Source: Octopus bimaculoides (Eukaryota). From it: DNA of 64,000 nucleotides. Position numbers and translations under genes: made by a program. Where the stretch lies: assembly GCF_001194135.2 (NCBI RefSeq), contig NC_068984.1, positions 133,709,709 through 133,773,708 of the forward strand, written 5' to 3'. Every line of letters starts with the position of its first letter. Position 1 is the stretch's first letter. Positions 12,501-44,459 of this stretch are shown one piece after another. The notes below the pieces were generated by a model that had not been told where the DNA came from, did not search any database, and saw nothing but the letters and a program-made list of their open reading frames with translations.

Positions 12501-15500
12501 TGAATTGGTAAGGCGTTGGACAAAATGTCTTGTATTTGCCTTGGTTCTTTATGTTGTGAGTTCAAACAAATCCTTTTAAGGTCAGCTTCACCTTTAAACT
12601 TTATGGAGTTGATAGAATAACATAGTAAGGAAGTACGGGATTTGACAGTATTGACTAGCCCATTCTTCTCAAAACTTGCTCTTGTACTTAAATCAGAAAC
12701 AAGTGTGAAGAACTGCCAGAATCATTAGATCTTTGGGAGGTAAAAAAAAAGAAATTATTACGTGGTATTTCTTCCAATTTTCTATAGCATATGTTAAAAT
12801 TCTGTTGAGGTCAACTTTGCTAATCATCCTTTTGGGATAGATTAAATGAAGTCCTGGTCAAGTATTGTAGTTGATGGGATCAACTTAACCACTGCTCAAA
12901 ATTACTGGCCTTCTTCCTTAATTAGAAACTTATTATTTTAGCAATGATGTTTTGTAGAGTATCGGTTAAAATAGCTGCTGTTCATTGATCAGAAATCAAT
13001 AAAATTACTTGTCAAATATTGCAATTAATTATTCTTCCATAACCATATTTTTAACAAAATACTCTGCTGGTGATTTAATTAATTTTGAAAATATTTGGAG
13101 AGTTTTAGTAAATAATGTTTCCCTTTATTAATATATGAACAAAAACGTATTATATTAAATTTTGATGCAAAGCATTGATTGAAATACATAAACTCTAAAA
13201 TGAGTGTTTTTATATCATAGTATCAAAGGTGGCATCAAAAGTTAAATTTTCAATATTCCTTCTAATCCAGTACACATTTTTGGTTGGTTTCAAACACAGG
13301 TTATTTACTATATTGCATCTAACTCTGTTGAAAATATTGGCTTTGGGAATTGACTGAAGGAAGGATTTGTGGGTATCTACGTATCAAAGATTTAATTAAT
13401 CAAAATATAGTATAAATAGAACCCTTTTAAAAAACTAAGTTAACCTGGAAAGTCCAGTTTAAAAAAATTTTTGTGAAGAATAACTTCTTAAACTATATAC
13501 ATGAGTTGTCAGTTATTTTATTTTGTTTTTTATTCTTTTTGCATTTTTTAAGAATTCATGCTCTTGGATTATCTAATCGGAGTAATGAACACCCTGATAA
13601 CCGTGCAATTCTCTATGAAAGTCTCACATACAGGTAATAGAGATGTTTTTAACCTTCTCTTAATAATGATCCATGTATTTTATCTTCATTTTACCCTTTT
13701 TCTAAGACTTGAGTTTGTAAAAAAATCAAATTTAATTTCGTACATTTTAGTAAACGGAAAATCGAAGATTTCATTTCTGCTTTGGAAGGATTTAAAGTTG
13801 CTCAAAAAATAATAAAACCGTTTCAGGATAAAGTTGATGGTTTCAAGTGAGTATCATTTCATTTTAAAGTGTCTAATTTTGTGTGTATGTGTATATATAC
13901 ATACATACATAAGTTGATATATTTGAAAGAGTTAAAATATTAATTGTTGAGCGTGATCATTGCCAGAGCAGCTGTCTGGCTTCTGTGCCAGTGGCACGTA
14001 AATAGCACCATTTGAGCGTGATTGTTACCAGCGTCGACTTACTGGCACGTGAAAAGACATTCGAGCGAGGTCATTGCCAGTGCTGCTGAACTGGCTCCTG
14101 TGCAGGTGGCACGTAAAATACACCATTTTGAGTGTGGCCGTTGCCAGTACCGCCTAACTGGCCCTTGTGCCGGTGGCACGTAAAAGCACCCACTACACTT
14201 TCGGTGTGGTTGACGTTAGGAAGGGCATCCAGCTGTAGAAACTTTGCCAGATCAGATTGGAGCCTGGTGCAGCCATCTGGTTTGCCAGTCCTCAGTTCAA
14301 ATAAAGAAGTGAAATAGAACCAGTGTTTATTATTGGTATAATGACATTTCTGAGATGCAACAATATATGTTTCAACACAGGAATTAACATCAGAAATCTT
14401 GCTAATCAAATACAAAAACAATATATTTTGTTTGGTCAGTGTAATAAATTTCCATGCAACATGTATTAAAGGGTGAAAAAAAAAAATATTTTGGGGAAAA
14501 GTGGTCTGAGACAGACCTCATGACTGGCTGTTAAACATTTTTCTTGTTTGAGGTAACATTTATCAACACAATACATCATTATTTTAAGTGTCATGTAATA
14601 TGTTGTAATCCTAGTTTAATGGTCTCGATTACAGATCTATTCTGTTGAGAAAAACAGTTACTGTGAAAAGTTCATCATCTTCTGGTTGTTTCCCTGATAT
14701 GGCAGAAAAACTAAAATATTTTGATGTAGGTATTTACATAAATCAATATGTTTTTATTAAAGAAAATACTTCATGTAATGGCAATGTTTAATTTTTTTTC
14801 TACATCGTTTCATTATTCCCATGTTTCTGATCTACTAAGTTATGCTGATGTAAATGAACCAACAATGGTTGTCAAGTGACACTGAGGGACAAACACAAAG
14901 ACCCCCTCTCTCTCTCTCACACACACACAAACGTGCATGACAAGCGTGTTTCTGTCTATCAAATTCATTTGCAAGGCATTGGTCAGCCCTAGGCTATGTA
15001 GCAGAAAACAGTTCATCAAGGTACTGTGCAGTGGGATTGAACTGGAAGCCAAGTGGTTGCAATGTGAGCTGTTTAATCACACAGCCATGCCTTTGACTAT
15101 GTATAACCATTTAAATTAAAAGTTCAGTAGTTTAAATATATTGGTTGGGGTGTTACCAGTGAAGATGTCTGCATTCCTCTGTAAAAATGTATCTTGTAAT
15201 TTAGCAAGCAATATCAGGATTAGTTACTTGAATGACTGAGCCCCATGAGGTGAGGTGGCTGCTGTAGCAGGTGTCTCTGGCCATTCTCTGTGGCATCACA
15301 ATCATGGTCATGTTCACAGGGTGTGACAACACCCCATTTGTTCTGGAATATATTACCTTCCTCTCATCTTCTGCAGCTTAACTCCCCCCCACTTTTTTTT
15401 CTATTTCTTTGTTTCCTTGTAAATAAATTTTGATTCAATCTTTATATAAATAAAAATAATATTCATTATAATAATAATGAAATTATTGTATACAGTGCTC

Positions 15501-18500: not shown

Positions 18501-21500
18501 ATATAGCAGTGCATCTGTTAAGCTGCAATTTTATCAGAAAATTTGATCTGAAGGCGAATGCAAGTTCTAATTTCTCTTATATTCTATTAGAAGAATTTTC
18601 TGAGCCACAGAAAATTGAAAATAATATTCCATATATTTTGTGAGTCATTTCATCGAGTATAACTTGTAATAAATATGTTCGTTGTTTCAGCCATTCCTTT
18701 TGATACGTGATGGACGTCATCCTTGCATAGGACGGTCGTCTGCTGCTGAAGACTTTATTCCCAATGATATGATGATTGGAGTAAAAGATGTAAGCTTTTT
18801 TTCTTTTACATTTTATTGTTTTTTTTTCTCTTTTATTTCTCTTTTTATGAAATATTTTAATATGGTTCTGATTATGATCACATAATCAACATTTGGATGT
18901 TTGGAGTGAATTTTCAGCAATTCTTGAATTACCCTTTAGCATTCAGATTGTTCTGTTGGGCATCCAACTGTAGAAACCAAGCCAAAATAGACCATGGGAC
19001 CTGGTACAGTCCCTGGCCTTGCCAGCTCCTGTCAAGCTGTCCAACCCATGCCAGCATGGAAATGGACGTTAAATGATGATGGTGATGATGTAAAGCTTAT
19101 TTATTGACGTTGTTTTGAATTAATCATGCATTATGTTGTAGCTTAGAGATTTCAATGGTGTATTTTCAGAATGACATTTTAGGGTAGGTATGAGAGATTG
19201 GATCTGGCTGGTTCAAATATAAAACAAATGAAAATTTGGGCCAGATATGGTCAGTTTGAAAGCTAAAGTGTTAATAGAATGGTTAGTTTAGAAAATTTAC
19301 AGTCTTGTTTTCAATAACTTAGCATAGATGACCTACTGGGAAGCCATGTATTCACTTCTTCAGCAAGACACTTGTTCCTGTCCCTTTATCATACTGTCAC
19401 CTCATTCAGTACTATACCCCAGGGGGGTCTTTCGAGTATTTGCTGACCTCACTAGTGCCAGTACTGTGAAAATAGCATCCATTATAGTCTTTGAAATGTT
19501 GGCATTAGGAAGAGCATCAAGCTGTAGAGACCATGTTAATGTAGTCGTTGGACTTTTGTTTATTGGTTCCTGTTGAACTGTTCAACCCATGCCACTGTAG
19601 AAAATGAACATTAAATGATGATGATGGTAAATCTTTTTAAAAAGAAAGTCACACTGATATTTTTTTATGCTTGTGTAATATTGGCTGAAACTGCATCTCA
19701 ATGAGTAGATTTTTTCTTTGGAGTAAGAAAGTACATTAATACTGATGTACGTCATTTACAAGTGGAGGCACAATGGCCCAGTGGTTAAGGCAGCGAACTC
19801 GTCATAGGATCGCGGTTTCAATTCCCAGACCGGGCGTTGTGAGTGTTTATTGAGCGAAAACACCTAAAGCTCCATGAGGCTCCGGCAGGGGATGGTGGCG
19901 AACCCTGCTGTACTCTTCCACCACAACTTTCTCTCACTCTTACTTCCTGTTTCTGTTGTGCCTGTAATTCAAAGGGTCAGCCTTGTCACAGTGTGTCATG
20001 CTGAATATCCCCGAGAACTACGTTAAGGGTACGAGTGTCTGTGGAGTGCTCAGCCACTTGCACGTTAATTTCACGAGCAAGCTGTTCCGTTGATCAGATC
20101 AACTGGAACCCTCGACATCGTAAGCGACGGAGTGCCAACAGCAAAAGTCATTTACAACATCAGGAGAAGACATGGCAGTTAAGACCTATGTTAGAAAACT
20201 GCTCAAGTATAAGTGATGCTGCTATGACTACACACACAAACCTTATGAACTGTAACCAACGAAAATGCTACCTTTTTCAGCGACGAGGATTCTGTACCCT
20301 TACCTGATCACTATTGATAGTCATTGCTTCACCCCCCCCCCCCGTTTTTTTGTTTTTGTTAGAAGGAAAAGAACGCTCTAAAACTGTACTGTTACAAAGC
20401 AGTCTTTCAATGAAGTAATTACATCTTTCTCGCATTTATTTTCAGAACATAGAAACTGAAGACCCCACCACTGATAGTCAAGTAGTATTGGTAACTGGTC
20501 CCAATATGGGTGGGAAATCTACACTGATGCGTCAAGTTGGATTAATTGTTGTCATGGCTCAGATGGTATTTATTTTCTTCTTTTACTCCTTCTTGATAAT
20601 TTTTTTTTTCCCCATTATGTGATTGATTAAAAACTTCTTAATTGCTTTCAAAATTGTTATTATTGAAGGATTCACTTTAATGATTATCAATTATTTCTAC
20701 AAAGTTCAGCTAACTTGCTACTTGTTGCCTTCTTTAGTTTCCCTCACTTATGGAAGGCAGATGTTAAACGATGATGATGATGAATGTTTGTTTTCTATGT
20801 TCAATTATAATAAAAGCAATTTTACATTACTCTATACTTCTGTAGAGTACAAATTTATTCTTATACAAGAATGTTGTTAACTTCGAGGTTTCAATCAACT
20901 AGGTCATCATCAGACTGCAGAATAATATACAGTAATACCTTACTTTACAATGATCCGCTTTATGAGATCCTGGGTTTATGAGTTTTATTTTATAATAAAT
21001 ATAAAAAGGGTAAACAGCCATTTTGTTTGTGTGGCAATACTGGTTCTGATGTGTCTATACAGCAATGGAGTAAAATGACAGCATAAAATTTCATTGCTAC
21101 TCTGGGAAATTGCTCTCCTTTATGAGCGACCTCCAGTAGCACATTTACTCATATCAAGGCATTACTGTATATATTTATATATGAGAAAGATGGCACGTAA
21201 AAAGCACCATTCGAGCATGATCGTTACCAGCGTCGCCTTACTGGCACTTGAAAAAACATTCGAGTGAGGTCGTTGCAAGTGCTGCTGGACTGGCACGTAA
21301 AAAATACCACTTGAGCGTGGCCATTGCCAGTACCGCCTAACTGGCCCTCGTGTCGGTGGCATGTAAAAGCACCCACTACACTTTTGGAGTGGTTGGCGTT
21401 AGGAAGGGCATCCAGCTGTAGAAACTCTTCCAGATCAAATTGGAGCCTGGTGCAGCCATCTGGTTTGCCAGTCCTCAGTCAAATCGTCCAACCCGTGCCA

Positions 21501-23688
21501 GCATGGAAAGCGGACGTTAAATGATGATGTGCACATATAGGAAACATAACCTTTGTATATAAAGTACATCGTATGTTCATAGGTGACGGGGCCTGTGAGG
21601 TTCTTTTATTGCAATTTGTTGTTTGAGTGTTCAGTTTGTGGAAGAAGAATCTCTGTTGACATTTAATTCTCTCTCTCTATTTATGACAGGTGTGAAGTTA
21701 GAATAAACATGTTTAAATTGTGATTTCATTCTGTAGGGTTGTTATGTGCCAGCTGAGAAATGTCGGATAACTCCAGTAGATCGAGTGTTTACTCGTTTAG
21801 GTGCCAACGACAGAATTATGGCAGGTATGTGTTCAGTTTTCCTTTTGTTGTAAGACCAGCTTCAACTGACCCCCCCCCCCACCTCATTGCATATGTAGTT
21901 ACTTTATTAACTTTTGAGTGATGATGGAAGTCCAAACAAAAAAAAAAAAGGTTTAAGTTGAATGAAAATGATATACAATGTGTCTGTTTCTGACAATGTT
22001 GAGCAAATGTCTTCAATAACCTGGGGCTGGTAGATGGAAACTGAAAGAATCCTGTTGTATGTATTGTGTGGATGATAGTTATAAGTGAGTGTCACTATCA
22101 TTTATTTCCAATATTCTGCAAAAAAAAAAAAAAAAAAAGGGGGTGGGTGGGTGGTAAATATTACTTGGCCGTGGCCAAATACTATCTTGCTTGGAAACAT
22201 TGTGACCCATGCAAGCATTTATATAATTTATATCCCAAGTATAGCTATCATTATTTAGGATAAGAATTGATAGAGAGAGGCCCCTTGCATGTCACCTTTA
22301 ATGCAGCAATATTGTACTGATATTCAATTTTTATATTTAACGCTTTTGTTAACTATATTTCTGTTGAAATACACCTTTGTTTCATCAAATTTTGAAGGTA
22401 ATAAAGAATTTAGTAAAAGGTCATTATTAATCTAGTATTTGGAATATAAACTGAAATTTTAATGGAAGACTTAATTTAACTCACTTTAAAACTACAATTG
22501 CATTAGTATTACTTTTACATGTGGAACCAGCCAAAATTACTGTGCTGTACAATATTTTCCAGGTGAAAGTACTTTCTTTGTGGAACTTAGTGAAACTGCT
22601 TCAATCCTACAACACGCAACAGAGAATTCACTAGTATTGTTGGATGAACTTGGTAAGTTTTTTCTTAAAACTGATATTGATCTATTAATCTGAATATATT
22701 TGCATGATTAAACTTCAGTTAAAATATCTTGTTCTATAAATTGTCAATGTACTAGAAGAATCATTTTCATGATCTCTTTGTAGGCAGAGGAACTGCAACC
22801 TATGACGGTACTGCTATTGCAGCTGCTGTAGTGGAGGAAATCTCGAAGACTATCAATTGCAGGACACTATTCTCAACTCATTACCATTCTTTGACTGACA
22901 TGTTTTCAAGTGATCCCAATGTTCGGCTTGGACATATGGTAAGTCTCCAGTGTGAAAATGGCTGTGTGATAGCATATAAGATCATTGAGCATATATATCT
23001 AGTTAACCGTATAATCTCTTCCACCAATTCTTTATATATATATATATATATATAGTAATTTCAGTTCAATAAGGGTTTGAAAACTTGTAAAATTTCACAA
23101 ACAGTGGACACCAATGATATTTAGTGATTGGAGAAAGCACAAGGAGTTTGACAAATTATCTAAGATTCAAAGCTGGAATATTTTTAGGCAGTGTTTGGTG
23201 AGGTGTGTACTTTATAAAAATATCTTCCATCCTTTTTTAAAGGCATGTATGGTAGAAAACGAGAGTGAAGATGATCCAACCCAGGAAACTATAACATTCT
23301 TGTACAAGTTTGTAAAAGGGGCATGTCCTAAAAGCTATGGCTTCAATGCTGCACGACTGGCCAGTATTCCCAATGAGGTAAGATGAATTTTAATATGGCC
23401 AGCCATCTTTAAGCACTTGTCTAAATATTTGTAAGCGACATGTACATTTTTATTTTATCACCAGATCATAACCAATGGTGTGAAAAAAGCCAAAGAATTA
23501 GAGAATAAGACCCAACGCATTCATTTGATCAGGTACGAAGCCATTTAATTTTCCTTTAACTGTGCAAGTAAACCAAGTTACTATTTAACCAGCAACTTAC
23601 ATAAATCTACTTTTCTTGCAGAGATCTATGGAAATTTGATGCAAAAAATCCGACAGAACTGAAACAGATGGTGCAAGCAATTGGCTGA
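103..23688 (+). CDS. MSH6: DNA mismatch repair protein MSH6 (MutS-alpha subunit), 5'-partial, 28 coding exons in window (about 1006 aa)
   Basis: Exons read by hand, all GT-AG and in frame: 103(or 116)-185, 1179-1266, 2631-2690, 3578-3652, 4250-4385, 4820-4959, 5505-5570, 6001-6072, 8471-8681, 8807-8876, 10055-10193, 11042-11150, 12228-12390, 13553-13633, 13751-13846, 14635-14725, 15969-16023, 16904-17004, 17112-17341, 17754-17886, 18691-18789, 20446-20565, 21737-21824, 22563-22652, 22784-22938, 23243-23377, 23465-23532, 23622-23688 (TGA). Motifs: mismatch-binding [26 protein letters not shown], Walker [59 protein letters not shown]. The N-terminal exons lie upstream of the window. Confidence 0.97.
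2322..2532. mobile_element. piggyBac-type MITE
   Basis: TTAA|CTCTTTTGATACC ... GTAATGAAAGGG|TTAA, with TTAA on both sides. Confidence 0.6.
6801..8303. mobile_element. piggyBac-type element ends flanking the 945-N gap
   Basis: TTAA|TCCTTTCGTTACC at 6801 and GGTAACAAAAGGG|TTAA ending at 8303. These could be one element or the ends of two. Confidence 0.5.
7118..8062. other. Assembly gap (N-run); other gaps at 27114-27386, 28916-29190, 59550-59579, 61372-61381
   Basis: Runs of N. Confidence 1.
9475..9534 (+). repeat. (TG)n(TA)n compound microsatellite
   Basis: Read directly. Confidence 0.85.
11210..11601 (+). mobile_element. Third SINE family: tRNA head, internal (TG)n, (GAT)n tail
   Basis: GGCTGTGTGGTTAAGAAGC...CTTGGGCAAGT...AGGAAGGG...GACATTAAATGATGATGAT. 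Partial copies at about 9560-9720, 14860-15100, 16620-16760, 18090-18440, 25200-25340, 31330-31530, 32680-32900, 49860-49960. Confidence 0.7.
11681..12125 (-). mobile_element. (GAT)n-tailed SINE with internal tandem repeats
   Basis: CATCAT...TTTAACG...CCATGCTAGCATG...GGATGCCCTTCCTAACGCCAACCACTC. Other copies at about 2964-3127, 6115-6479, 8940-9123, 10238-10421, 13950-14300, 21192-21528, 34876-35390, 36438-36612, 41030-41180, 44757-45000, 48398-48712. Confidence 0.8.
15468..15835 (-). mobile_element. 3' fragment of a CR1/L2-clade LINE, antisense in an MSH6 intron
   Basis: Open frame 15831-15619: [70 protein letters not shown]. This has the TRGH...FF..RV...WN.LP..VV...S...FK signature of CR1/L2 ORF2 C-termini. 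Confidence 0.8.
18932..19270. mobile_element. Degenerate piggyBac-type MITE interrupted by a SINE 3' end
   Basis: CCCTTTAGCATTCAG ... TTGAAAGCTAAAGTG|TTAA. A (GAT)n-tailed SINE fragment lies inside at about 18955-19090. Confidence 0.4.
19764..20142 (+). mobile_element. Full-length tRNA-derived SINE, (CAA)-tailed family (probably octopus OR-type)
   Basis: A box TGGCCCAGTGG, B box GGTTTCAATTCC, 3' hairpin. 11-bp TSD GTCATTTACAA at 19751-19761 and 20147-20157. Confidence 0.85.
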
Positions 23689-23815: not shown

Positions 23816-25609
23816 CTAAGAATTGGCATTTGGTCCTTTCCTTCGTCCGAAACCAGCAACCACATTGACAAATCTCCTGTTGTATTGCATGCGTCGCTTA
23901 GCACGACCAGTCTTCTGTTTCTTCTTTTCTTGCTTCTCCACCTGGAAAAGAAAAGGTCCATTTTCATTATATCACCCCAACACATCAAAAGATGCTTCTA
24001 ACAAGATGGGGATATTAAAAAAAAGGAAAACTTACTTTGGGAGTTTGTCCCTTCACTTTGCCAGCTCGAGCCAAAGAACCATGGACTTTGCCTGTTAGAG
24101 AAAACAACAGTTTAAGAAACAATTCACCAAATCTAAATGTACATATAAAATGACAACAAATAACTTGCAATACTCATCATCCAACATGTTTTCCATGCTG
24201 GCATGGGTTGGACTACAAGCAATATAAAACATCACTCACCTCCAAGCATTCTCATATCCAAGTGAAGAGTGTTCATGTCTTGCAATGACCCAATCGAGAA
24301 ATCATTGGCAAGTGGGGAGCCATTGAATGTTAAAACTTGCTCATTGATATCAAATCCACCCAAATTGAAAAGCATGTTCTGAAATGTATAATATAGAATA
24401 AGTCTTTCAAGATTTCAAAAGAAACATTACCATGCATACATCTCTAGCCTTTTCAATGCCACCAAACTTCTATTCACTCCATTGGTATCTAATTATCTCC
24501 TACATTTATGTGAGAATCCAGTGAAGTGATTTTCATTATCAAGTTTGAACAGCTTTACTAGTTACTCATCAGAGCAACAAAGAATTGCTTATTCTTTCAA
24601 CTGGTTTTAGCTATTAGATGAGAACATATTTATAACACCACCTTCAACAATTCAAATCAATCACCACACAAATGGCTCTTGCAGTATCTACTTAAGAAAT
24701 ATCACTCCAGGCCATGACAGATGACATGTCTATATATTAAATTCCTTCTGATCTTAGATCTGCAGCCATATTATTATGGCACAAGCAAACAATGTATGAA
24801 GTATAAAGAACGAAGTAAGCTAACCATGGTCGTCGTACTAGGATGAATCAGCTTGAGGCTATTTCAGTTTGAACTGCTGCCCACTTGCCATACCAGAGCA
24901 TGACCATATGAAAGTTACTAATCCCAACCCCCTGTCAATAACTACTGCAACTGGACTAATCATCTTGCTCGTCTTATGCACGAATGGATTGGCTGAATAC
25001 ATTACAGCTAGATGGCCAGCAGTTCTCAACTGAGGCCCATATAGGATTTTGTGCTGCCATCATCTCATTGCCCAGGCTAGCATGGATTGGACAGCTTGAA
25101 TGGAGCTGGCAAGCAGCATCAGACTCCATCTGATCTGGCATGGTTTCTTAGTGTGTACTGGGTGCCTTTAGTAGGTGCAGACATGCCTGTGTGGTCAGGA
25201 AGCTTGACTCTCAACCACAAGGCTTTGGGTACAGCCCCACTGTATAGCACCTTGGGCAAGTGTCTTCTGCTATAGCCTCAGGCCAACTGAAGCCTTGTAA
25301 TTGAATTTGGCAGGTGGAAGTTCCTGTTGCATGTGTATACATGCCAGTGCTTGTCTCCTAACACTTTGTTATAAAAATATGTGAAGTTTATTTTAAACAT
25401 AAATTGGCAACGGGTGTCCACATGAGTAAAAATGGTAATCAAAGGGGTGCGCAAAAAAAAAAAACGATTTAAATTCTCAATTTTAACTAGGAAATTTTCA
25501 AATAACTGGAATGGAAAGACAAAAGCATTATTACCTTGATATCATAAATAGTCTCATTCCCCATCAGACTGAGGGTATGAGTCTCATTAGCCTTTACAAA
25601 CAGCTGCAT
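23816..25609 (-). CDS. FAU: FUBI-eS30 fusion protein (ubiquitin-like FUBI + 40S ribosomal protein S30), 131 aa
   Basis: Coding exons 25609-25535 ([25 protein letters not shown]), 24378-24240 (...LDMRMLG), 24091-24036 ([19 protein letters not shown]), 23941-23816 ([41 protein letters not shown]). The LGG|KVHGSL cleavage junction is intact. Junctions are GT-AG; CDS is 396 nt. Confidence 0.97.
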
Positions 25610-26259
25610 CTTGAATCTCTGTCAAAAGAAAGAAATAAAGATTAGAAAGCGAAACTGCAAAACCCAACTCATGAATCAGTGATAATTTTGCAAAACTAGG
25701 AAGTTTTATACTCTTGAGAGGATTAATAAAAAAGCTTTGTAAACTATTGCTTGTAACATGTAAGTCCGGTTGCAAAACAGATTCAGGTAATTTACACTGC
25801 AACAGCTCACTGTAAATTAGTGATGTGGGGATTTGTAAGTTCCAACATTTTAAAGATAGTACAAATAAGTAGGGAAAAAAAAAAAGCCCAAAATTGGCTG
25901 CCCTGCATATATACATAAACAGTTAATTACAAACCATTTTTGATAAGGGAAAGATCATAGATAAATAAACAAGCTAATTTGTTCCCAACTTTACTGAATA
26001 CCAATCTCAATAATTTTGCAAGAAGTTCCGACACATCTTCGTCAAAAATGAAAGGTTTCCCTTCAAAATGCAAGTAACTAAGGAACGTAGAGACATATTG
26101 TAACACATCCATAATGACGTTAAGCTGGATCAGCTAAATATCTCAAATGAGTGAAAAAAAAACTGAGCAATTATTCTGTTTTAAATAATTGTAAAAACCA
26201 CCTATTATTTGTACAAGAAATACATAAAATTTTCGTCTTTTGTCAACGAAAACACTTAC

Positions 26260-26385
26260 CGCGCCTAAATTTCAATTCACACTGAAAATGTAAATACAAA
26301 CGAATCCAGTAATGTTTCTTAGTTATCAAAGTTAAAAAGCGATTCGTGTACCTGGTCTCTCAGATCAACAAATAAAGAATAAACT
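26260..26385 (-). other. FAU: Predicted non-coding 5' exons of FAU: exon 1 about 26377-26352 and a 22-nt exon 26281-26260
   Basis: Minus strand shows CCAG|gtacac donor at 26352/26351, ttttcag acceptor at 26282 and GCG|gtaagt donor at 26260/26259. The next acceptor (gacag) is at 25619, 9 nt before the ATG. A TCT-like initiator TTCTTTAT has its C at 26377. Inferred from splice signals only. Confidence 0.6.
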
Positions 26386-26389
26386 CAAC

Positions 26390-26442
26390 GGCATAACTAC
26401 AGGGTTTTACCCCCCAGACGGGTAAAACCCAGTAGTTATGCC
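26390..26442. mobile_element. 53-bp palindromic mini-element (collapsed MITE) with an 8-bp target-site-like duplication
   Basis: Arms GGCATAACTACAGGGTTTTACCC (26390-26412) and GGGTAAAACCCAGTAGTTATGCC (26420-26442) have 22/23 complementarity and a 7-nt loop. AACTCAAC flanks both sides (26382-26389 and 26443-26450). Confidence 0.7.
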
Positions 26443-28674
26443 AACTCAACTTCTAGAAATACAATAACGAGACACAACAATTGCGACACTTTTTGAAATA
26501 TGGTGCAATCACCAGTAGCAACAAGCATGAAAAATCGATGTCGATGATTTCACGATGTGTCGCAATTGTTCATTTGTGTTTGGTTACTGAGTTTCTATTA
26601 GGTTTTCGTTTTACACAAATTAAAGTACTTTGTGCGCTTTAATCATATTCAATTGAAAAACAACCCAACTTCCAAATGAATGTCCATACTGTCTCATGAC
26701 AATAGGCTCAATAAAATGCGGAAGTAATATCCTCATTAGTGTGTCCCAACGATTTCGTTTTCTCATAACTTTCAGAAGGTGTAGATTATGATTACATCGG
26801 GTTTAAAAAAAAAAAAAAAAAAAGGCCCCGCACACATTATATACTATCGTCATCATACCTACAATAAAGTGAAACTTGTAAGGAAAAAGTGGGATGAGCG
26901 CGCGCGTCCACCAATCTAAAAGGCATTTGTAAGAAAATGTCCTACAAAAAAAAATAATTAGGCGGACGTCGGAGATGAAAAAAAAATTTTTTTTTTCGAA
27001 AATGGTTTCTTTTATTAGTTCCCCCTTCGTACCGATTTCGTTTCTTTCTCACTCTTACAAATATTGCTTTTCAACATACCTTACCGTCTAAAAACATTCA
27101 CTTCTTACCGAATNNNNNNNNNNNNNNNNNNNNNNNNNNNNNNNNNNNNNNNNNNNNNNNNNNNNNNNNNNNNNNNNNNNNNNNNNNNNNNNNNNNNNNN
27201 NNNNNNNNNNNNNNNNNNNNNNNNNNNNNNNNNNNNNNNNNNNNNNNNNNNNNNNNNNNNNNNNNNNNNNNNNNNNNNNNNNNNNNNNNNNNNNNNNNNN
27301 NNNNNNNNNNNNNNNNNNNNNNNNNNNNNNNNNNNNNNNNNNNNNNNNNNNNNNNNNNNNNNNNNNNNNNNNNNNNNNNNNNNNNNAAGTTATGAGGAAA
27401 CAAAGTTGGAGGGGGATGACGACGACACACACCCGTGCATGTATACGGTAAAAGCAACGAAACACCGGTTTCCCTTATTTCATTAATTTACTTTCTTGTG
27501 CAGATTTTTTTCTTATCGATCTTATACTTCTGGAGTAAACTCCGTCTATTCAATTTATTTGAGACCATTAGAGAAAAGTAAAACAATTCAGTGAATAAAA
27601 AAAAAAAATTTTTGAGGAAAATATTCCGAGTCAACAAATTTGACTCAAGAATAATCAACTCGTGGCGAATAAAATAAGCAAAAATGTTCGCCGTAACGGC
27701 GTTAATTGCAACAAGTCTGTAAATAATAATGAATCTACTAGAAATCCTATTTTGCTGCCAAATTACTGCTAATAAACTTTTAGTGTCGGCCACAGTTTTT
27801 CTTCAATGTGCAAATTACAAAATAGGGATTGAAGAAAAACTACATACACGATTTATGTTCCGTTGGAAAGCTGCTTAAAAACTTTATATATTGGTTTGAA
27901 GCGGAGGGTAAGTTATTTTGCACATAATTTAAATTCCTAAGTATGAAAATCAATACCCCAAGCAAGGTCGACTAGTATATATTTCCAGAAGTTCTGATAA
28001 GTTTTCACTATAAATACTTCATTCTTTCAACGATAACATCGTAAAATACGTAGGCAATCTGAGAACTTTGACATAGAGTCTTTTACACGGTCTTGTTTGT
28101 CCCACTAGAAATAACAGCCAAATTCCTCGACACCCAACAGGTTTACAAAAAGGAGGTAGGATGTGAAGAATAAGGTTGTCGGAGGAGGAGGATGGGTGTT
28201 AAGGAAAAAGATGAAATAGAAACGGTTGGAAAGCATTTGATCACAGGTCTGCTTAATCAGAATTAATTTGGTTGGAGCTAAACAACATGGTGACATACTT
28301 TCTAATAAAATTAAAATTTGAACGCAAGAAGCTGTCCTCAGCGATACGATGTTCAGGTTTTGAGCAAACGACACAACACGTGTGTTAATTTTTCCTTCAA
28401 TACTTTTCTCCAAAATGTGAAAAGGGTTTAACATTACATTTATATGCTCCTCGTGCGGTATATACATATATATTATACGGCGCAATATGAAATTGAAATC
28501 AATTACCAGTATATCTATGACGCAATACAAATTGAAACTTATTTTGTATAAATCAGTGGTTCCCAAAAAGTTATAAAATTACGCATTAGCTTTGATTAAC
28601 TGCTGTCTATCGAGAGAGTTCAAGACCCAGGTTTTCAATACCAGACTGGTTGCTTTACAAAGCAGTAGGCCTTT

Positions 28675-28915
28675 GGCGTAACTACAGGGTTTTACCCCCC
28701 AGACTTTGGGAGGTCATAACTTTCAGAAAAATGAATATTTTTTAATGAAATTTTCTATGCATATAGTATTTACTATGTAGAATCCGAATATACAAAAATT
28801 TCCGATGAGAGTATTTTGGAATGGGGGTGGAGGACAATTTTCGGAAATTCCAACAGAGTCCACTTAAATTCTTCTTAACTTCCAGGAAAATTAATATTTG
28901 GAGAAAATTTCACGA
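28675..28915 (+). mobile_element. Left end of a longer non-autonomous DNA transposon related to the 53-bp element, truncated by an assembly gap
   Basis: 28675-28704 matches 26390-26419 at 29/30 nt. It continues into MITE-like AT-rich internal sequence up to the N-run. Confidence 0.55.
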
Positions 28916-29397
28916 NNNNNNNNNNNNNNNNNNNNNNNNNNNNNNNNNNNNNNNNNNNNNNNNNNNNNNNNNNNNNNNNNNNNNNNNNNNNNNNNNNNNN
29001 NNNNNNNNNNNNNNNNNNNNNNNNNNNNNNNNNNNNNNNNNNNNNNNNNNNNNNNNNNNNNNNNNNNNNNNNNNNNNNNNNNNNNNNNNNNNNNNNNNNN
29101 NNNNNNNNNNNNNNNNNNNNNNNNNNNNNNNNNNNNNNNNNNNNNNNNNNNNNNNNNNNNNNNNNNNNNNNNNNNNNNNNNNNNNNNNNNGAAGGAATAG
29201 AGTAATTCGTAGAAATTGATGTAAGAAAAACGTTGGGGATGCTCTTCAAAAGAAGAATATTTTATTCTGTTATTGTCAAAGAATATTATAGAAGAAATAA
29301 TATGGTCATGTACAAAATTTTATGGGCAGATTTATGGTAATAGTAGGAATAATATTTAAATAAAAAGGAAGCAACTTACATGTGATGTTAAGCCTAG

Positions 29398-29451
29398 AAA
29401 TGGCGGAGAGAGAAAAAGAACGACAGCAATGTGCGTGAAGAGAACTTCCGG
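29398..29451 (+). promoter_or_regulatory. Probable RNF8 promoter with YY1-like and ETS-like motifs
   Basis: AAATGGCGG at 29398-29406 and ACTTCCGG at 29444-29451, in a CpG-containing patch about 200-250 nt upstream of the ATG. Confidence 0.45.
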
Positions 29452-29650
29452 TTCAGCCTGCAGCAAAACTGAACAATTTAATTGCGTGATCATTCGTTAT
29501 ATTATATTAAAAAATTTAAATAATGTATAAGAAAATTTAAATATTTACTTTTTATTGTTTTACGCAATTTTTGCACGTTTTGTCTCCCCCATATGCAATT
29601 TTCACCGAGGCTATCATCTCACCTTTATTAAGACACAACCGTCATCCAGT

Positions 29651-32600
29651 ATGGCGTTACAATATTTTTTGGAAAACGTTAATCACCCAGAGAAAAGCAT
29701 TCTGTTAAACGAAGACACGGTAATTCATATTTTTATTCTTTCATATGTTTCAAGAAAGAAAGTGCCTTACATTTTGATACCTTAATGTTTTCTCAATCTG
29801 TTTTTTTTAATTGAATATGCTTGTCAATAGCATATTGTTTACAAGGCGCGATTTGCAACGATGTTGTTACTATTAAGTTAGTAATATATATATATATCAC
29901 TTATTTTAGCAATTTCTCTTTAAATCTTCTTTTATGTTTTGTATTTTCTATAACCACTTTAATCTTGTATTTTGTTCTGCTGTCGATAACAAAAATACAA
30001 GCTGTATTCTATTCAATGGCGTACTTTTCTACTCTTTGTAATTACTCTGCTACTTAACTGATAGGATAATTTATTAAGCTGTTACGTTATATTTTAATGC
30101 AGAGGGTTGATATTCTACAGTGGAAAGATTAGTGGTTAGTAGCTGATTGTCCGACACTATAGGTAACAATGAGAGATGCTTGGACGAGGTGGTATGTGGT
30201 TAGTTTTGAGCAGAGGCCGCTGAAGTAGTGACAGAATAAGCAGTGAGGAGGCAGTGGAGAGTGTCCTATTAGGTTGCCCGTCTTAGAGGGGGGAACACAA
30301 TGGTATGTTGCCATAGATTGGGATAGCTTTCTCAGGCGAGAGAGCCAGGGAGCTGACACCTAGCGCTAGCACCTTGTTGTACCATATCTGAGCCGCTTTT
30401 TGGTGCGTGTATAGAAGATACAAATTTTAAAGTAAAATAATTTTAGCCAAAGAAATAATAATGATGAAAGTGGCTCTGAAGGGAAGAATTCAACCAAATA
30501 TCGGTAGTTCACGTTAATGTGTGTTTGTACCAAACTATATATGCGTCGCACATTTATACTTCATCTCATTAATGGTGCTTAGGTGCTGGCTCATTGTCCT
30601 GGGAAAAAAGGGTCAAAGGTCATTTGATCACAGGTCTGCTTAATCAGAATTAATTTGGTTGGAGCTAAACAACAACGTGACAAATGGGATGAAATAAGGC
30701 GACATACTGCCCAATAAAATTAAAATTCAAACGCAAGACTATAACTTATTAGTTCGGCAAAAGAGACTGATAGAATAAGTAACTAGACTTACAAAGAATG
30801 TCCTGGGGTCGATTTATTCGGCTAAAACCCTTCAAGGTGGTACTCCAGCATGGCCACAGTCAAATGTCTGAAACATATGCAAGAATATTAATGTGAGAAT
30901 CGAAAACCTAATCAGGTATACAGTAAATAAGTTAAAACTGCTAGATGGGATACGAAAGTCCATTAAATACCCCCCCAGTGTGTCCCTTCACTAACTCTGC
31001 CAGCTACCGATCTGTTTCTTTCATTATCATCATTACAGAAGTAGCAGAAACCGTCATTACAATCACCTACAAGCTTTTTCCCTCGTCGCTATTATTGTTT
31101 CCATAGAGCTAGGTCTTCCTAGAATCGTCTTTCCTTGCTCTTGAGAGGTTGCCCGCCATTGCTTGTCATCTGCGTTTTATGTCTTACAAGTTCCTGTCAC
31201 GCCGCATCGTCCCAACATATTCTTTTACTTGTTTCAGTCGTTTGACTGTGTAAGCTTAGTACTTATTCTCAGTCATTTTTGCTGAGCCGCTAAGTTTCGG
31301 GACGTAAGCACTCCAGTATCGGTTGTGAAGCGATTGTGGACACACGCACGCACGCACGCACGCACGCGCGCGCGCGCGGCGGACAGCGACGGGCTTCTTT
31401 GAGTTTCCGTCTACCAAATCCACTTGCAAGGCTTTGGTCGGCCCGAGGCTATAGAAGACACTTGCCCAAGGTGATACGCAGTGGGACTGAAAGCGGCGGA
31501 ATTATGGTTGGGAAGCAAGCTTCGGCACTTTTCCTTTAAGCGTGACAGCTTAAATATAATCTACTTTTGTTTTTATCTTAAATATGGTTCAGAATATTTT
31601 CCTAATCGACTTTCACCAAATACATTTCTAAGTCACATGAAGGGAAAATACGTTCCTTATGCAAAAGCCCATGCCGTCTGCACCAGCCAGTTGCCTTTTC
31701 ATTATCCATTAAACTAATAATCAAATCCGAATAATCTATGCTACTCACTGATGGAAAATTCATATTGAAATTGTAAATGTTACCACTAAATATAAGCAAG
31801 ATAAAATTAAATCATATTTAAGCTGTCATGCTCAATCGAAAAGGCACCCAAGCTTCTTGCCACACCTGCTGACAGGGTTGATGTGGCCTTTCTTCACTTT
31901 TTCTGTTATACAACCTATAGTCACCTTTAACAATGTACACTCTATGTAGAATACTCTTCATTCCTCCATAAGCTTTCACATACAGTAAGCTTAAAGATGC
32001 TCAACCTGCTAGAAATAGCAACTAAATCCTTTGTAATTTTTAGATACAGGACAATAGTAAAAACTACTTTCCCAAGACAAGCCTTTCTGTTTATGGCCAA
32101 AATATGCTTCACCTTGTTCTTTACTGCTACATACAGAAACATCCTACTTCATATACAAAAGACCATCTCGATGATTGCACTGTCTCCTCTCTATCAGTTC
32201 TATCACTACACTAATATAACAACAAGCGGCGAGCTGGCAGAATCGTTAGCATGCCAGGCGAAATGCTTAATGGTATTTCGTCTGTCGCTACATTCTGAGT
32301 TCAAATTCCGCTGAGGTCGACTTTGCCTTTCATCCTTTCGGGGTCGATTAAGCAAGTTACGCACTGGGGTTGATGTAATCGACTTAGTCCCTTTGTCTGT
32401 CCTTGTTTGTCCCCTTTATGTTTAGCCCCTTGTGGGCAATAAAGAATTAAATATAACAAGCTAATTGGATCCCATGCCTACTGTCATCACCATCCAAGTC
32501 ATACAGTAACAACCAGTATATTAACTCTCTAAAATTCTCTTCTCACCTGCATTGCAGCAGACATTGATTGACAAGATGTTCAATCTAATCATCAACCAGA

Positions 32601-35600
32601 TCAATGACACCAGTTTTACAGAGCCTGTTCATTGTCCCTGGGTTATAACTAATGATTTCAAATTTTTTCCACCATTGCATGGCACCTTGCGTGAGTGTCT
32701 TCTACTTTAGCCTTGGATCAACCAAATCTTTGTGTGTGGATTTGGTAGATGGAAACTGAAAGCCCATTGTGTGCGTGTGTGTGTGTGTGTTCCCTCCATT
32801 GGTTGACAACCAATGTTGGTGTGTTTATGTCCCTATAACTTATCAGTTTGGCAAAAGAGACTGATAGAATAAGTACTAGGCTTACAAAGAATGTCTTGGG
32901 GCCGATTTCTTCAGCTAAAACCCTTTAAGGTGGTACTCCAGCATGGCCACAGTCAAATGTCTGAAATACATACAAGAATATTAATATGAGAATCAAAAAC
33001 CTAATCAGATATACAGTAAATAAGTTGAAACTAACTTGACTATTACTTTTCGAGTGGTTGGCACCTCTGACTAAGTCAATTAGTCTAAGCGATTTACTTT
33101 TTAAATATGCTCATTTTTCATACCTATTTTGTTGTTCTTTCATCATCACCTTGGTATGAAAAGTAGTTTGGAGATTGTCTGAATAAATTAAAATTTTATA
33201 TATTGAATAAATTAATTCTTGTCACTTGAATGTCTCTTGTTTTTTCAATTCAGATAAAAATTGGACGAAGTCAAGATTTACCGGTATGCCTGTTATCTGT
33301 GTGGATTTCTAAACATCATGCTACTATTAAAAGAAATGAAGAAAATTGGACAATTATAGATGAGAATGTAAAATTGTCTTCAGTTTGTTTTTTCTTGTTT
33401 GCTCAATTGTTTCTGCTATTGCTTGTCTGAATTTTTTTTTTTTTCTGGATCAGTTTGGCTATCCAATTGTTTGCTGATTTTCTCAACTCCAGGTTAGATA
33501 ATATATTTTAAAATGAAAGAATCAAAGACTGAAATAGATAAAAGAAATATAGATTCAATGTCTTTCTATCAATCCAATGTTTCCATTTGTTTTCTTTCTT
33601 CATTTTCAAATCTCTTACAGTACCTCTCATTAATTTTAATTAGCATCTCATTAATCAAATTTCTCTTTCCTTATTTTCCAGAGTTTAAATGGTGTTTTCG
33701 TAAACAAGAAAAGAATTCAGGTATTTGAGCAACATGTGATTAAAACTGGAGATCTCATTCAGATTGGAAATTCTAAAGACGAACCTTTCTGTTATAAGCT
33801 TCAAGCAACACTAGTGAAACATAAACCTCACAAAAGTGACTTTTTGGCCGTAAAAAGACATAAACCTGAAATGCCTGTGATAAACAACTCTCCCAAAAAT
33901 CATCTGAAATTCCTCAATAAACCTGTTGATAAAAAAGTGCCTTCTTCACCATTGTTAGTTACTTGTTCAGAAAGTAACAGCAGTGATAATGATAATAAGA
34001 ATATTAATGATAATGAAATCCCCTGTTCTTTGGAAGCGATGGGTTCACCAATGTCAGAAAATGGTGCTACTTCTGATTATGAGATCAAGTTAAAAGAACT
34101 CGAAGAGCGTTTGCAAATGAAAGAAGCAGCTTTGAAATTGGAGAAAGAAAAATCTGACTCTCAGGCAAAAGCCATTGCAAAATTGGAAGCAAAACGGAAA
34201 CAGGTTGAATTTGAACTTCAAAAAACACAGGTACTTGTACTGGCTATATCCAAAACTTATAACTGTTTTCAGCATTATCTGCATTTTTATGTCTGTTTTT
34301 ATCCATGCTTTGTATAGGTTAAATGGGATTCATTGAGACTTGTTTTCAAGCAAAGAAATATTTTTCCCTTAGTCTAGATGTGTTTTCATTGGAGATGGCA
34401 AACAACCAACACCACTTGTATAAAAGGTGATGTTTTGTTATGTCAGAGAAGTCAATGCAGTTATCATTCCTCTTAAATGATTTACAAGTTGACAGCTGCA
34501 GTAAAAACATCTTGTGTGTGTGTGTGTGTGTGTGTGGGGCAATTGCAGGGAGTTGACTTCTTGAAGAGGAAAGACTGCACATAGGGTTCAAATTAAAGAA
34601 CCCCTATGTGGTTCAGTCTCATACTGAGAAGACACATGAGACCAGTATATTCTGGGTTGATCAGTCTCTTGGGAATGAAATTTAATCGATGGAAAGCGTA
34701 TAGCAGCCTATCATATATACAGGATTGGCTAAAAGTCACCTGACAGTAAATCAAAACCACTTAATTCCAAGATTTATTTATGTTTAACAACTGAATGAGA
34801 CTTTGCTAATAAACAGACAAACGGTGATTTTAATTGCAGCATTCAATTATTATACATTCTTAATTGGAATCTTCCTCATCGTTTAACGTCTGCTTTCCAT
34901 GCTAGTGTGGATTGGACGGTCTGATTGAGGACTGGCAAGCCAGAAGGCTGTACCGGGCTCTAATCTGATCTAGCAAGGTTTCTACAGCTGGATGCCCTTC
35001 CTAATGCCAACCACTCCGAGAGTGTAGTGGGTGCTTTTTATGTGCCACCAGCACAAGGGCCAGTCAGGCGATACTGGCATCAGCCACACTTGGATGATAC
35101 TTTTACATGCCACCGGCACGGAAGCCAGTTAGGCAGCACTGGCACTGATCATGGTCAAATGGTGCTTTTTATGTGCCACTGGCCTGGGTGCCAATCAGGA
35201 AGTACTGTCAGCGGCCACGACAAATACTTCACTTGCCTCAAAAGGTCTTCGCAAGCACAGTTTATTGCCCAATCATTGAAGGATACTCTTAAATGTGCTG
35301 GTTATGCTGCACTGGCATAGGCCATGGTTACGGTCTCACTTGGTTCGTCGGGTCTTCTCAAGCACAGCATTTCTCCAAAGGTCTCAGTCACTTTTTTTTT
35401 CGTATTTATCAAAAATTTGTTTAATGGGATAACAGAAAAAAACCAAAAAAAAAACTTGCAAGTAAAAACATAGCAAACAAAATATTGTTTCTCTTGTCCA
35501 TTGTTAATGTGAAATGTTGATTGGTCTTTACACCTTTTGGTTTATTTTGAAATTACAGAAATTAAAAGAAGAAGAAAAAAAGCAACTGGAACAAGAATTT

Positions 35601-42425: not shown

Positions 42426-44293
42426 TTAGTCAAGCTGAAAAAGAGAAAGATATTTTTTATATATATATAATAGTAATATTAGGGATAAAATCCAAAATTA
42501 CAGGTAAAAACTCAATTAAAATCAATTTATTAAAATTAAATTAAGTTTCACAGTATAAAATATATAGTATTAGGGAAAAGAACCAAGGTTCATGAACTCA
42601 TCGATGAAAATCCAGTCACATATAGAAAAAATTTATAATTAAAAGTACAATAAATACGTATAATAGAATACAAATTAAATATAAGACCAAGATATATATA
42701 TATATAAAAATAAAAAACAAAAGCAAGAGTATTCCAGGATACGACAGTTTGAAACATTCTCGACGGCTCGATCTATTTTGGCTTTTGCACATATACTAGA
42801 AATTTGCCTATATTCCTTACTCTTTCGGCCCAAACTGTATTAATTCGGTTCCATACTTCCCTTTATTGGATTTCATTTGTCTAACAGTAGTTAGACCTGT
42901 TGAAACCCGAATCTTCTGTGCTCAAAACTGACCAAATCGTCAAGTAATGTTTCGAACCGATATCTCAATATCAAATTTAGCGACATAAATACTGGTACCT
43001 TCTTAAATCCAATGTCATTGGAATATTCTCGGAAACATCTTCGGCACATGAAGAGACTGTATTTCCTTATGACACCGTGAGTGTTGGCACAGACTCGACT
43101 GATGGAAGAAAAAAAAAAAGAGGGGGAAAATACAAAGTTTATAATAATAAAACCATAACGATAAAGACAAATGGTTGTTTACATATATAAGCATTCGTTA
43201 CAAAATGAGGCGGAGGTAAAGAATACTCACACCACCCGTTTTCGGTTAACAAAAACCCCAAACCCAATCACAAGATGTATTTTTTTTTACCATCGACCAA
43301 AACGAAAGGGACCACAAAGAAAATATGCAACATTCAGCCACTTCAACTCCCAAATTATCATTATACACGATTAAGATTAATAAAGCTGAGTTAATTACCA
43401 TTTTATGGTATATTCTATTATAGATACTAAATATCACACCTTAGAATCTTCGTATTTATTCAGGTATTTCATATGAGCCAAAGAAGGCGCCCCTTAAACT
43501 GACTCAAATATATAATATACATTAAAGTGAAAATACAATCGAAAAATACTCAATTTCGTCAACAAATATACCGGAAGATATGCTATATACACACGTCTTG
43601 CATTATAGTTGGTAGAGGGTGCGATTTGACTGCTGTTTCTAGCAGGGCAAGCGATCACTTAGAGTAGCATCTTATTTAGATCGTGAACACAGTAGGAAGT
43701 AATATGCGATTAAAGAATGGTCGCAAAAAACGGAAAAGGGCATTCTTGATCTTAATGGATATACTTGAATTGAAGAGTTAAAACACTACGAATTATACGG
43801 CCATGGCAAACACTAACAACATGGCGACCACATCTTCTCAAGGTGGGAGAAATAGGAACATCGATAATAAACCATCTATAGTAATTTATATCTGATTATT
43901 AGTTTCATCTTCAAAACATATTAGGGAGTACAGAATAAATAAATAAATAAATAAACATACAATTCGTATAATTTTATCAATGGCAGTGAAAACTATGAAC
44001 ACACGTGTCTGGAAGAATATCGTGCGATTCGGACTACGGAAATGTGTTACTATTTCATCATTTAAAATAAAGTATTATCTTTGGAAATTACCATTTACCT
44101 TGGTACCTTTATTAAATGTTATTGTTTAGCTCCAAACCAGCTGTGACCATCCCATTTAAGGTGGTATGATGTGGTTTAAAGATTTTGCTGCTATTTCTAG
44201 CAGATGGCGCTTTCGTCTTGAAGCTGCCTCTTAAATTCGACTCCGCACATGTGTGATGATAGTTGTATGATAACTCGTGGATCGTATAAAAAA

Positions 44294-44324
<31 letters not shown>

Positions 44325-44401: not shown

Positions 44402-44459
44402 TTTTAAATATTTAAGAGATATGCACGAACAACGTACGTCTGGTGCGAGTGTTCAACAT

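Follow-up and report, generated by a model that had tools for sequence, protein, structure and literature searches.

The window, a 64,000-nucleotide stretch of Octopus bimaculoides DNA, carries on its minus strand a FAU gene whose product matches O. bimaculoides XP_014785489.2 exactly. Exons 2–5 span 23819–25618, with the ATG at 25609 and coding segments at 25609–25535, 24366–24235, 24098–24030 and 23911–23819. Upstream of them we placed a non-coding exon 1 at 29380–29418 (minus strand), whose first base we infer to be the C of CTTTTTCTCTCTCC (29418–29405); the donor CAT|GTAAGT ends the exon at 29380. Across the junction of exons 1 and 2 the protein P0123 reads ...TSH|RFKMQLF. In octopus gene models, FAU has spurious N-terminal extensions, which were read from the 5′ UTR. 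Intron 1 (25619–29379, minus strand; GT at 29379–29378, AG at 25620–25619) holds a 53-bp palindromic element, a longer copy of the same family and an older MITE-like element. The upstream exon 1 is used in the FAU models of four octopods (O. bimaculoides X1, O. sinensis, O. vulgaris and Argonauta); the X1 model carries it upstream to at least 29493, and the Argonauta model starts at the homologous pyrimidine tract. This tract is 14 nt long at 29418 in the window, and 26–33 nt upstream of it lies CCGGAAGT (29444–29451, minus strand), which we take to be an ETS/GABP-type site and whose CGGAAGT does not vary between Octopus and Argonauta. Exon 1 and its promoter form the sole non-coding block of the FAU 5′ region that is conserved between Octopus and Argonauta, and exon 1 is located 233 bp from the start codon of the divergent gene RNF8. 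Gene models, motifs and conservation thus support a predicted FAU first exon and promoter at about 29380–29470, shared with RNF8 as a bidirectional promoter. The region resembles the TCT/5′-TOP promoters of ribosomal-protein genes in its C followed by 13 pyrimidines, its upstream ETS-type site, its lack of a TATA box and its divergent neighbor, while the palindrome is outside such a promoter, about 3 kb downstream in the intron.

A preliminary description of this DNA had reported a near-perfect palindrome with a flanking direct repeat at 26382–26450, and the palindrome, its loop and the repeat were all found there. The left terminal inverted repeat (TIR) is the 23-nt GGCATAACTACAGGGTTTTACCC (26390–26412, plus strand). 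It is followed by the 7-nt spacer or loop CCCAGAC (26413–26419, plus strand), in which the left-end sequence shared with the longer copy goes on, and by the right TIR (26420–26442, minus strand), whose reverse complement is GGCATAACTACTGGGTTTTACCC. The arms pair at 22 of 23 positions, the sole mismatch being at position 12, A against T. The 53-mer has GGCATAAC at either end, where the longer copy has GGCGTAAC. The element is flanked by two 8-bp copies of AACTCAAC, at 26382–26389 and 26443–26450; this direct repeat is perfect and its boundaries tolerate no shift, not even of one base. Searching with the 23-mer at up to three mismatches we found three matches in the window and none in 100 dinucleotide-preserving shuffles, which excludes a chance origin. 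Folding of the hairpin gave z-scores of −7 to −11, and as RNA the palindrome is predicted to form a hairpin of −39 kcal/mol on the FAU sense strand.

Alignment with related species had been proposed as a way to find an empty site, and O. sinensis provided one: its orthologous site is clean, with a single AACTCAAC, exactly one GTTGAGTT and no insert. Because this site is empty, the 53 bp together with the 8-bp duplication represent a true transposon insertion, and the earlier view of an element reduced to its two TIRs, with a genuine 8-bp target-site duplication (TSD), is borne out. The state in O. sinensis could also stem from a deletion between two 8-bp repeats, which would change the timing of the event but not the nature of the element. 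The 23-nt TIRs, the TSD with an empty site in a relative, and the small size without coding capacity are those of a MITE. The 53-bp palindrome is a real insertion of a transposon of which little but the two inverted ends remains.

A second family member lies 2.3 kb away, as had been noticed earlier. Positions 1–30 of the 53-mer (left arm plus loop) match 28675–28704 at 29 of 30 positions, and from there the longer copy, which starts GGCGTAACTACAGGGTTTTACCCCCCAGAC, runs on to an assembly gap at 28916–29190. The 241 bp that precede the gap (28675–28915, plus strand) are the left part of a longer non-coding MITE, with only short stop-free stretches and with a subterminal direct repeat at element positions 40–66 and 199–225. 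Its candidate left TSD copy is AGGCCTTT (28667–28674), a motif that was not found at the O. sinensis counterpart of this site. From 29191, directly after the gap, the sequence is that of the orthologous flank; the right end of the longer copy must therefore lie inside the gap, and the copy would be at most about 516 bp long, provided that the gap size is right. In the gap we expect a right end ...GGGTAAAACCC(A/T)GTAGTTA(C/T)GCC followed by AGGCCTTT. The chromosome-level O. bimaculoides assembly has the identical sequence and identical gaps at this locus and so leaves the gap unclosed, and a look-up of the 45-aa ORF adjoining the gap, made in search of an independent contig, returned nothing on record. 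An O. vulgaris locus contains one diverged relative of the same end, GGCATACCTACAG...TTTCAGAAAAATG...TTTTTTAATGAAATT. In about 210 kb of octopus DNA only three members of the family were seen, two in the window and the diverged one in O. vulgaris. Exact scans for the TIR in public metagenome and viral collections gave 0 matches, and a search for further copies that used a stop-free stretch of 55 aa translated from the MITE interior gave no candidate. The longer copy had also been placed upstream of RNF8; the location upstream holds, but only as part of FAU intron 1.

To which superfamily the element belongs can be judged from its ends. Merlin elements, related to IS1016/IS1595, have conserved 5′-GG termini, 8–9-bp duplications and TIRs from 24 bp (Feschotte, 2004, as summarized in PMC8101967), and O. 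bimaculoides has 191 Merlin-type proteins, an unusually high number (PMC8101967). The 53-bp element shares with them the 5′-GG start of its TIRs, a TSD of 8 bp, where Merlin makes 8 or 9, a TIR of about 23–30 bp and a host rich in Merlin transposases. We recovered an 8721-bp Merlin element from O. sinensis and O. vulgaris that encodes a DDE_Tnp_IS1595 protein; its termini are GGCGATG/GGCATAG and perfect 8-bp duplications flank three of three copies. The earlier suggestion that GG termini and an 8-bp TSD suit Merlin agrees with this element, which carries the same signature. The 53-bp element is, however, far shorter than the described Merlins, and its similarity to the recovered Merlin TIR does not go past six bases, the common ends being limited to GGCRTA. 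BLAST of the ends of the 8.7-kb element against the window returned low-complexity matches only, and a Merlin copy on another O. bimaculoides contig had no recognizable inverted ends. As no transposase-encoding element with matching GGCRTAACTACAGGG termini was found in the octopus loci examined, we regard Merlin membership as probable. The same result leaves some room for another superfamily, since 8-bp duplications are made by several of them (hAT, P, Mutator, Zisupton and Novosib), and non-autonomous hAT and P elements likewise combine an 8-bp TSD with short TIRs. Such an origin seems to us unlikely, though it keeps appreciable weight. The termini of hAT elements are YARNG and those of P elements CATG, and here the ends read GGCAT; the duplication length would suit hAT, but the termini do not. 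In contrast, a GG terminus is a Merlin hallmark (PMC8101967), and the octopus Merlin copies start GGCGAT/GGCATA and have 8-bp duplications.

The preliminary description had set the palindrome in the FAU core promoter, with a first exon at 26352–26377 (minus strand) that began at a TCT start at 26377 and ended at a donor CAG|GT. Its arithmetic was correct, the palindrome spanning −13 to −65 when counted on the minus strand from the C at 26377. If 26377 were a main or alternative FAU start, an essential ribosomal-protein gene would carry a transposon palindrome in its core promoter, either tolerated or co-opted as a promoter or cruciform element, which would be notable. In favor of this placement, CAG|GT stands 26 nt after the initiator-like TTCTTTAT and O. 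sinensis has retained the two motifs, the site falls in a CpG-preserved domain (observed/expected 1.7 at 26200–26399), and an earlier RefSeq record has a FAU isoform X2 whose 5′ exon is unknown. We nevertheless consider it improbable, as all available models take the upstream exon, and the models of the four octopods together with the conservation in Argonauta put the promoter about 3 kb upstream. A TCT/TOP start was defined by the initiator YYC(+1)TTTYY, or by a C followed by at least 4–15 pyrimidines; TTCTTTAT at 26377 has an A at +5 and only four pyrimidines, and does not conform to the strict YYC(+1)TTTYY. It matches the relaxed form, of which the window has 154 occurrences, or one in about 830 nt of each strand. 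Conservation gives a promoter at 26.3 kb no support, because the identity of 88–98% around the palindrome equals that of the rest of the intron, about 90% between O. bimaculoides and O. sinensis. The 26377 segment is absent in Argonauta, in contrast to the conserved exon 1 promoter at 29.4 kb, and in O. vulgaris the whole segment is deleted, a loss of 2 × 245 bp, while FAU is intact. With the first exon and promoter at about 29380–29470, the palindrome falls in intron 1. CpG observed/expected is about 1.0–1.2 across 26–30 kb, including the palindrome, and 0.1–0.5 in the neighboring gene bodies; the 26–30 kb interval is probably unmethylated, promoter-proximal chromatin. Since this interval includes the palindrome, the insertion might have a regulatory effect or mark a minor internal start.

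The stable hairpin on the FAU sense strand also raises the reading that the palindrome is a functional RNA gene within the FAU intron, a microRNA precursor or a snoRNA. Introns of ribosomal-protein genes are frequent snoRNA hosts, and the palindrome has weak Rfam matches to SNORA69, mir-1954 and mir-55. There is a precedent in Made1, a palindromic MITE that gave rise to miR-548 (PMC1784062). Against this, the best Rfam scores are far below their gathering thresholds (26.8 versus 47 for SNORA69 and 23.7 versus 99 for mir-1954) and are driven by the stem alone, and the SNORA69 match comes without a paired 5′ hairpin and without an ACA box. Nothing reached an Rfam threshold anywhere in the window, and any function would be very young, the element being absent in O. 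sinensis. On these thresholds and on inspection of the alignments we rejected the RNA-gene reading, which is extremely improbable. A search of the whole window for tRNAs found none. The hairpin is nevertheless transcribed inside the very abundant FAU pre-mRNA, and cephalopods edit RNA heavily, so the insertion might be non-neutral in another way, as a source of lineage-specific small RNA or a substrate for A-to-I editing, or by marking or modifying a minor internal FAU start; taken together, we judge these effects very improbable.

The reading we favor, with a probability of roughly 0.8, is that of a non-autonomous element, most probably mobilized by Merlin, that was internally deleted and inserted in intron 1 of FAU, most likely without effect. 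A cut-and-paste DNA transposon, on which a Merlin transposase (IS1595-type DDE) most probably acted in trans, inserted at the target AACTCAAC in the O. bimaculoides lineage, and filling in of the staggered 8-bp cut produced the flanking duplication. The 53-bp copy keeps only 30 nt from the left end and 23 nt from the right. We infer that it derives by internal deletion from a longer MITE, one of roughly 250–520 bp that resembled the copy 2.3 kb away, and that the deletion was of the kind that results from abortive gap repair or end joining. This loss may have preceded the insertion, giving a mobile TIR-only micro-MITE comparable to human Made1, or have followed it in place. The conserved TOP-type start is about 2.98 kb upstream of the element, and the acceptor of exon 2 follows 770 nt downstream. 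The element would be transcribed in the FAU pre-mRNA, where it could fold as a 23-bp hairpin, and be spliced out with the intron. The likeliest effect on FAU would be none.

Whether the unit was already 53 bp long on arrival, as a mobile, multi-copy, TIR-only micro-MITE rather than a local product of its neighbor, bears on the earlier naming of the longer copy as the parent element. Position 4 is an A in both arms of the 53-mer and in the O. vulgaris relative, and a G in the neighbor, so that the neighbor is not the obvious donor. Made1, in which two 37-bp TIRs surround 6 bp, shows that such a unit can form a successful family (PMC1784062). On the other hand, neither the window nor related loci of about 150 kb yielded a second 53-bp copy, and the 7-nt spacer would offer very little DNA for the ends to pair within one molecule. 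We regard arrival at 53 bp as a tentative possibility, with odds somewhat below even.

As the site is most likely in the first intron of FAU, about 3 kb past the conserved promoter, the 53-bp element is probably an ordinary, neutral remnant, and intronic remnants of this kind are common. As a Merlin-type insertion it is nonetheless clean and datable, the empty site being preserved in a sister species, and it is an extreme TIR-only derivative that compares with Made1 but comes from a different superfamily. Made1, or MiHsmar1, is an 80-bp human MITE derived from mariner (PMC1784062), for which an origin by end joining has been discussed (PMC3814204). Made1 belongs to Tc1/mariner and makes a TA duplication; its copies number in the thousands and microRNAs have derived from it, whereas here one 53-bp copy is known, without evidence of processing. 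Both elements consist of two TIRs and a 6–7-nt spacer, and both are internally deleted, near-perfect palindromes that form a stable hairpin when transcribed.

The palindrome at 26390-26442 lies between two exact copies of an 8-bp direct repeat, AACTCAAC (26382-26389 and 26443-26450, as the window reads). It consists of two 23-nt arms with one mismatch around a 7-nt spacer (GGCATAACTACAGGGTTTTACCC / CCCAGAC / GGGTAAAACCCAGTAGTTATGCC), and the first 30 nt of this 53-mer are matched at 29 of 30 positions at 28675-28704, where the match extends up to the assembly gap at 28916-29190. The arms, loop, flanking repeats and recurrence claimed in the preliminary description were all borne out by our reading. 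At up to three mismatches the 23-mer has three copies in the window, versus none in 100 shuffles, and the hairpin energy is -39 kcal/mol for minus-strand RNA and -22.5 kcal/mol for DNA (z-scores -7 to -11). Aligned with the window, the orthologous site in O. sinensis reads ...TATTTtTAGAA GTTGAGTT TATTCTTTATTTG..., that is, a single 8-mer without the insert, with both flanks alignable base for base. The empty site sought in a related species thus exists, and it indicates that the window gained 61 bp (53 of element and 8 of duplicated target), with boundaries that cannot be shifted by even one base. Such a gain is the classical signature of cut-and-paste insertion, and the suggested transposon origin of the palindrome is strongly supported by this comparison. 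An identical pattern would result if the O. sinensis lineage had lost one 8-mer and the insert by slippage between the two repeats; this would change the dating and not the nature of the element.

To place the insertion relative to FAU, we located the gene by tblastn with human FAU and then by reading the minus strand, which gave four coding pieces (25609-25535, 24366-24235, 24098-24030 and 23911-23819). Over its full length the encoded protein equals O. bimaculoides XP_014785489.2, and it shares 97% identity with FAU of Octopus sinensis. Directly before the ATG exon there is a good acceptor, ttttgacag, so at least one non-coding exon must lie upstream. Three FAU models (P0001 of O. sinensis, P0122 of O. 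vulgaris and P0123, isoform X1 of O. bimaculoides) carry an N-terminal extension encoded by an upstream exon, which in the window ends ...ACATCACAT/GTAAGT at 29380 and is joined by splicing to AGATTCAAGATG at 25618; the intervening intron 1 occupies 29379-25619 on the minus strand. The extensions (41-45 aa, without homology; window 29380-29493 and 29597-29617, minus strand) are probably annotation artefacts, 5′ UTR exon(s) mis-called as coding, and the current O. bimaculoides FAU protein record is the 131-aa form. The O. sinensis and O. vulgaris models begin within ~10 bp of the 5′ end of the RNF8-like gene. The upstream exon includes GTT CTTTTTCTCTCTCC GCCATTT, and its tract from 29418 consists of C followed by 13 pyrimidines, with CCGGAAGT 26-33 nt upstream. 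The FAU model of Argonauta hians, a partial coding sequence, starts exactly at the homologous tract CATCTTTCTTTTACC, and a four-species alignment revealed conservation from Octopus to Argonauta of CGGAAGT, ACGCAC, TCTTTT, TCCGCCATT and CACATGTAAGT. The RNF8-like ATG, at 29651, is 233 bp from the pyrimidine tract, a spacing that implies a compact bidirectional promoter.

The 53-mer had been described as part of the FAU core promoter, with a TCT start at 26377. Most probably it is instead situated in intron 1, about 3 kb downstream of the conserved exon 1 promoter (2.98-3.03 kb from the inferred start), with the exon 2 acceptor a further ~770 nt downstream. At the proposed start the sequence is TTCTTTAT, which departs from the strict YYCTTTYY consensus; the relaxed motif has 154 matches in the window, one for every 830 nt of strand. 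Around 26377 the sequence is 88-98% identical to O. sinensis per 50 bp, not above the rest of the intron, and when the FAU 5′ region as a whole was searched against Argonauta by BLAST, matches were confined to the coding exons, RNF8 exon 1 and the block 29362-29547, with none around 26.2-26.6 kb. O. vulgaris, 97.7% identical to O. sinensis in this region, is without L001:12760-13004 and 13040-13284 (O. sinensis coordinates); neither the insertion site nor the proposed start with its donor is left, so the segment is dispensable in a close relative. A promoter with its start at 26377 is improbable, and exaptation of the palindrome as a promoter or cruciform element is unsupported. CpG observed/expected is ~0.85-1.24 over 26-30 kb versus 0.1-0.5 within the bodies of FAU, MSH6 and RNF8, and by this measure the whole of intron 1 and the palindrome in it resemble unmethylated DNA close to a promoter. 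Given this ratio, which does not pinpoint a start site, the 53-mer may have a regulatory effect, or FAU may have a minor internal start.

The missing O. vulgaris sequence comprises two 245-bp blocks of intron 1, both present in O. sinensis and O. bimaculoides, with 35 bp kept between them (L003 ~12700-12735 versus L001:12760-13284), and may reflect one complex ~490-bp deletion or an assembly or haplotype difference. Nearby, at 26260-26281 on the minus strand, a 22-nt segment, TGTGAATTGAAATTTAGGCGCG, lies between cattttcag and gtaagtg; it is identical in O. sinensis and missing from O. vulgaris, and may represent a small cassette exon of the FAU 5′ UTR. A 24-nt inverted repeat (AACAATTGCGACACTTTTTGAAAT / ATTTCACGATGTGTCGCAATTGTT; 26476-26499 and 26547-26570, 88% complementary, 47 nt apart) begins 26 nt from the flanking 8-bp repeat and 34 nt from the palindrome, and is found also in O. 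sinensis.

The longer copy that starts at 28675 lies 0.7 kb into intron 1. Its surroundings can be aligned to O. sinensis at 28474-28551 on one side and from 29191 onward on the other, so its right end must fall inside the gap and its length is at most ~516 bp, provided that the gap is sized correctly; assembly GCA_001194135.2 shows identical gaps at this locus. Having no long ORF, the longer copy is a MITE, and a direct repeat lies subterminally in it (element positions 40-66 and 199-225). It stands in a stretch that cannot be aligned with O. sinensis, and AGGCCTTT is its candidate target-site duplication. This neighbour had been taken for the parent of the 53-mer. It is a member of the same family, but not the obvious donor, as position 4 is G in the longer copy and A in both 53-mer arms. 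This A is shared by a diverged O. vulgaris relative, which reads GGCATACCTACAGATTTTG...TTTCAGAAAAATGGGTACTTTTTTAATGAAATT from 19439 on the minus strand of L007. Another MITE-like element, older and ~670 bp long, has imperfect inverted ends (GTGTC..CCAACGATTTCGTTTTCTCATAACTTTCAGA) and occupies 26741-27433, including the gap 27114-27386, and is found in O. bimaculoides, O. sinensis (L001:11853-12524) and O. vulgaris. Its subterminal part is similar to the longer copy at positions 20-70 (CCCCCCAGACTTTGGGAGGTCATAACTTTCAGAAAAATGAATATTTTT), so the two may come from related families, this one being the older.

Merlin elements are characterized by TIRs from 24 bp, a conserved terminal 5′-GG and 8- or 9-bp duplications (PMC8101967, summarising Feschotte 2004), and O. 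bimaculoides has unusually many Merlin-type proteins, 191 (PMC8101967). A search with one of these, KOF79200.1 (S1 Appendix of PMC8101967), led to a DDE_Tnp_IS1595 protein of 305 aa, encoded at two O. sinensis loci and one O. vulgaris locus. The three copies (L006:4266-12986, L008 ~4253-12987 and L007 ~3887-12938) have in common a unit of 8721 bp, bounded by ~355-bp TIRs (termini GGCGATGTTTCG.../GGCATAGTTTCG...), and all have perfect 8-bp duplications (GCAAATCT, CAAGGCTT and GAAACTTT). The 53-mer resembles these genuine Merlin elements in its GGCRTA ends and 8-bp duplication, but its TIR is unrelated to theirs past the first six bases, and we found no autonomous element whose ends match. The Merlin assignment proposed earlier is probable, at roughly 0.6-0.7. 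Mutator, Zisupton and Novosib are further candidates; hAT and P elements, which end in YARNG and CATG, respectively, do not fit. Identity among the 8.7-kb copies, each at a different locus, is 99.2-99.6%, suggesting recent activity in the O. sinensis/O. vulgaris lineage, and their interior contains a 344-bp inverted repeat and long TA/TG microsatellites.

The 53-mer is composed of left-end positions 1-30 joined to the terminal 23 nt of the right end. When an element has been excised, abortive gap repair or end joining typically yields internal-deletion derivatives (PMC3814204), and the 53-mer could have arisen in this way; it may have moved already at 53 bp or may have been trimmed after insertion. 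The closest precedent is human Made1, a near-perfect palindrome of two 37-bp TIRs around 6 bp (PMC1784062). Nothing in the window reached an Rfam gathering score. At relaxed thresholds the hairpin weakly matched SNORA69 (26.8 versus 47 bits), mir-1954 (23.7 versus 99) and mir-55; the alignments cover the stem alone, with the 5′ hairpin unpaired and the ACA box absent, and we rejected an RNA gene, the matches being generic hairpin resemblance. The 53-mer is probably an ordinary, neutral intronic remnant, notable chiefly for its unusually small, TIR-only form and for the clean empty site that a sister species has.

The gene order is common to all loci compared (O. sinensis, O. vulgaris and Argonauta hians), with a divergent FHA+RING gene (RNF8-like) upstream of FAU and a convergent PWWP+MutS gene (MSH6-like) downstream. 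Minus-strand ORFs at 50030-51828 with elongation-factor-G-like sequence (including GMGELHLDI) point to a mitochondrial EF-G-type gene downstream of the RNF8-like gene. CpG-undepleted domains are sharp (26001-30000, 31001-32000, 43001-45000 and 54001-64000; observed/expected ~0.9-1.2), the one at 26-30 kb covering the FAU/RNF8 bidirectional promoter and the entire FAU intron 1 and ending near 26.0 kb, a pattern consistent with mosaic gene-body methylation. Interspersed repeats at 25184-25319 (FAU intron 2), 21191-21529, 31246-31523, 32672-32977 and 34869-35187 match many sites of the O. sinensis locus at 70-85% identity and are probably octopus SINEs or other high-copy families.
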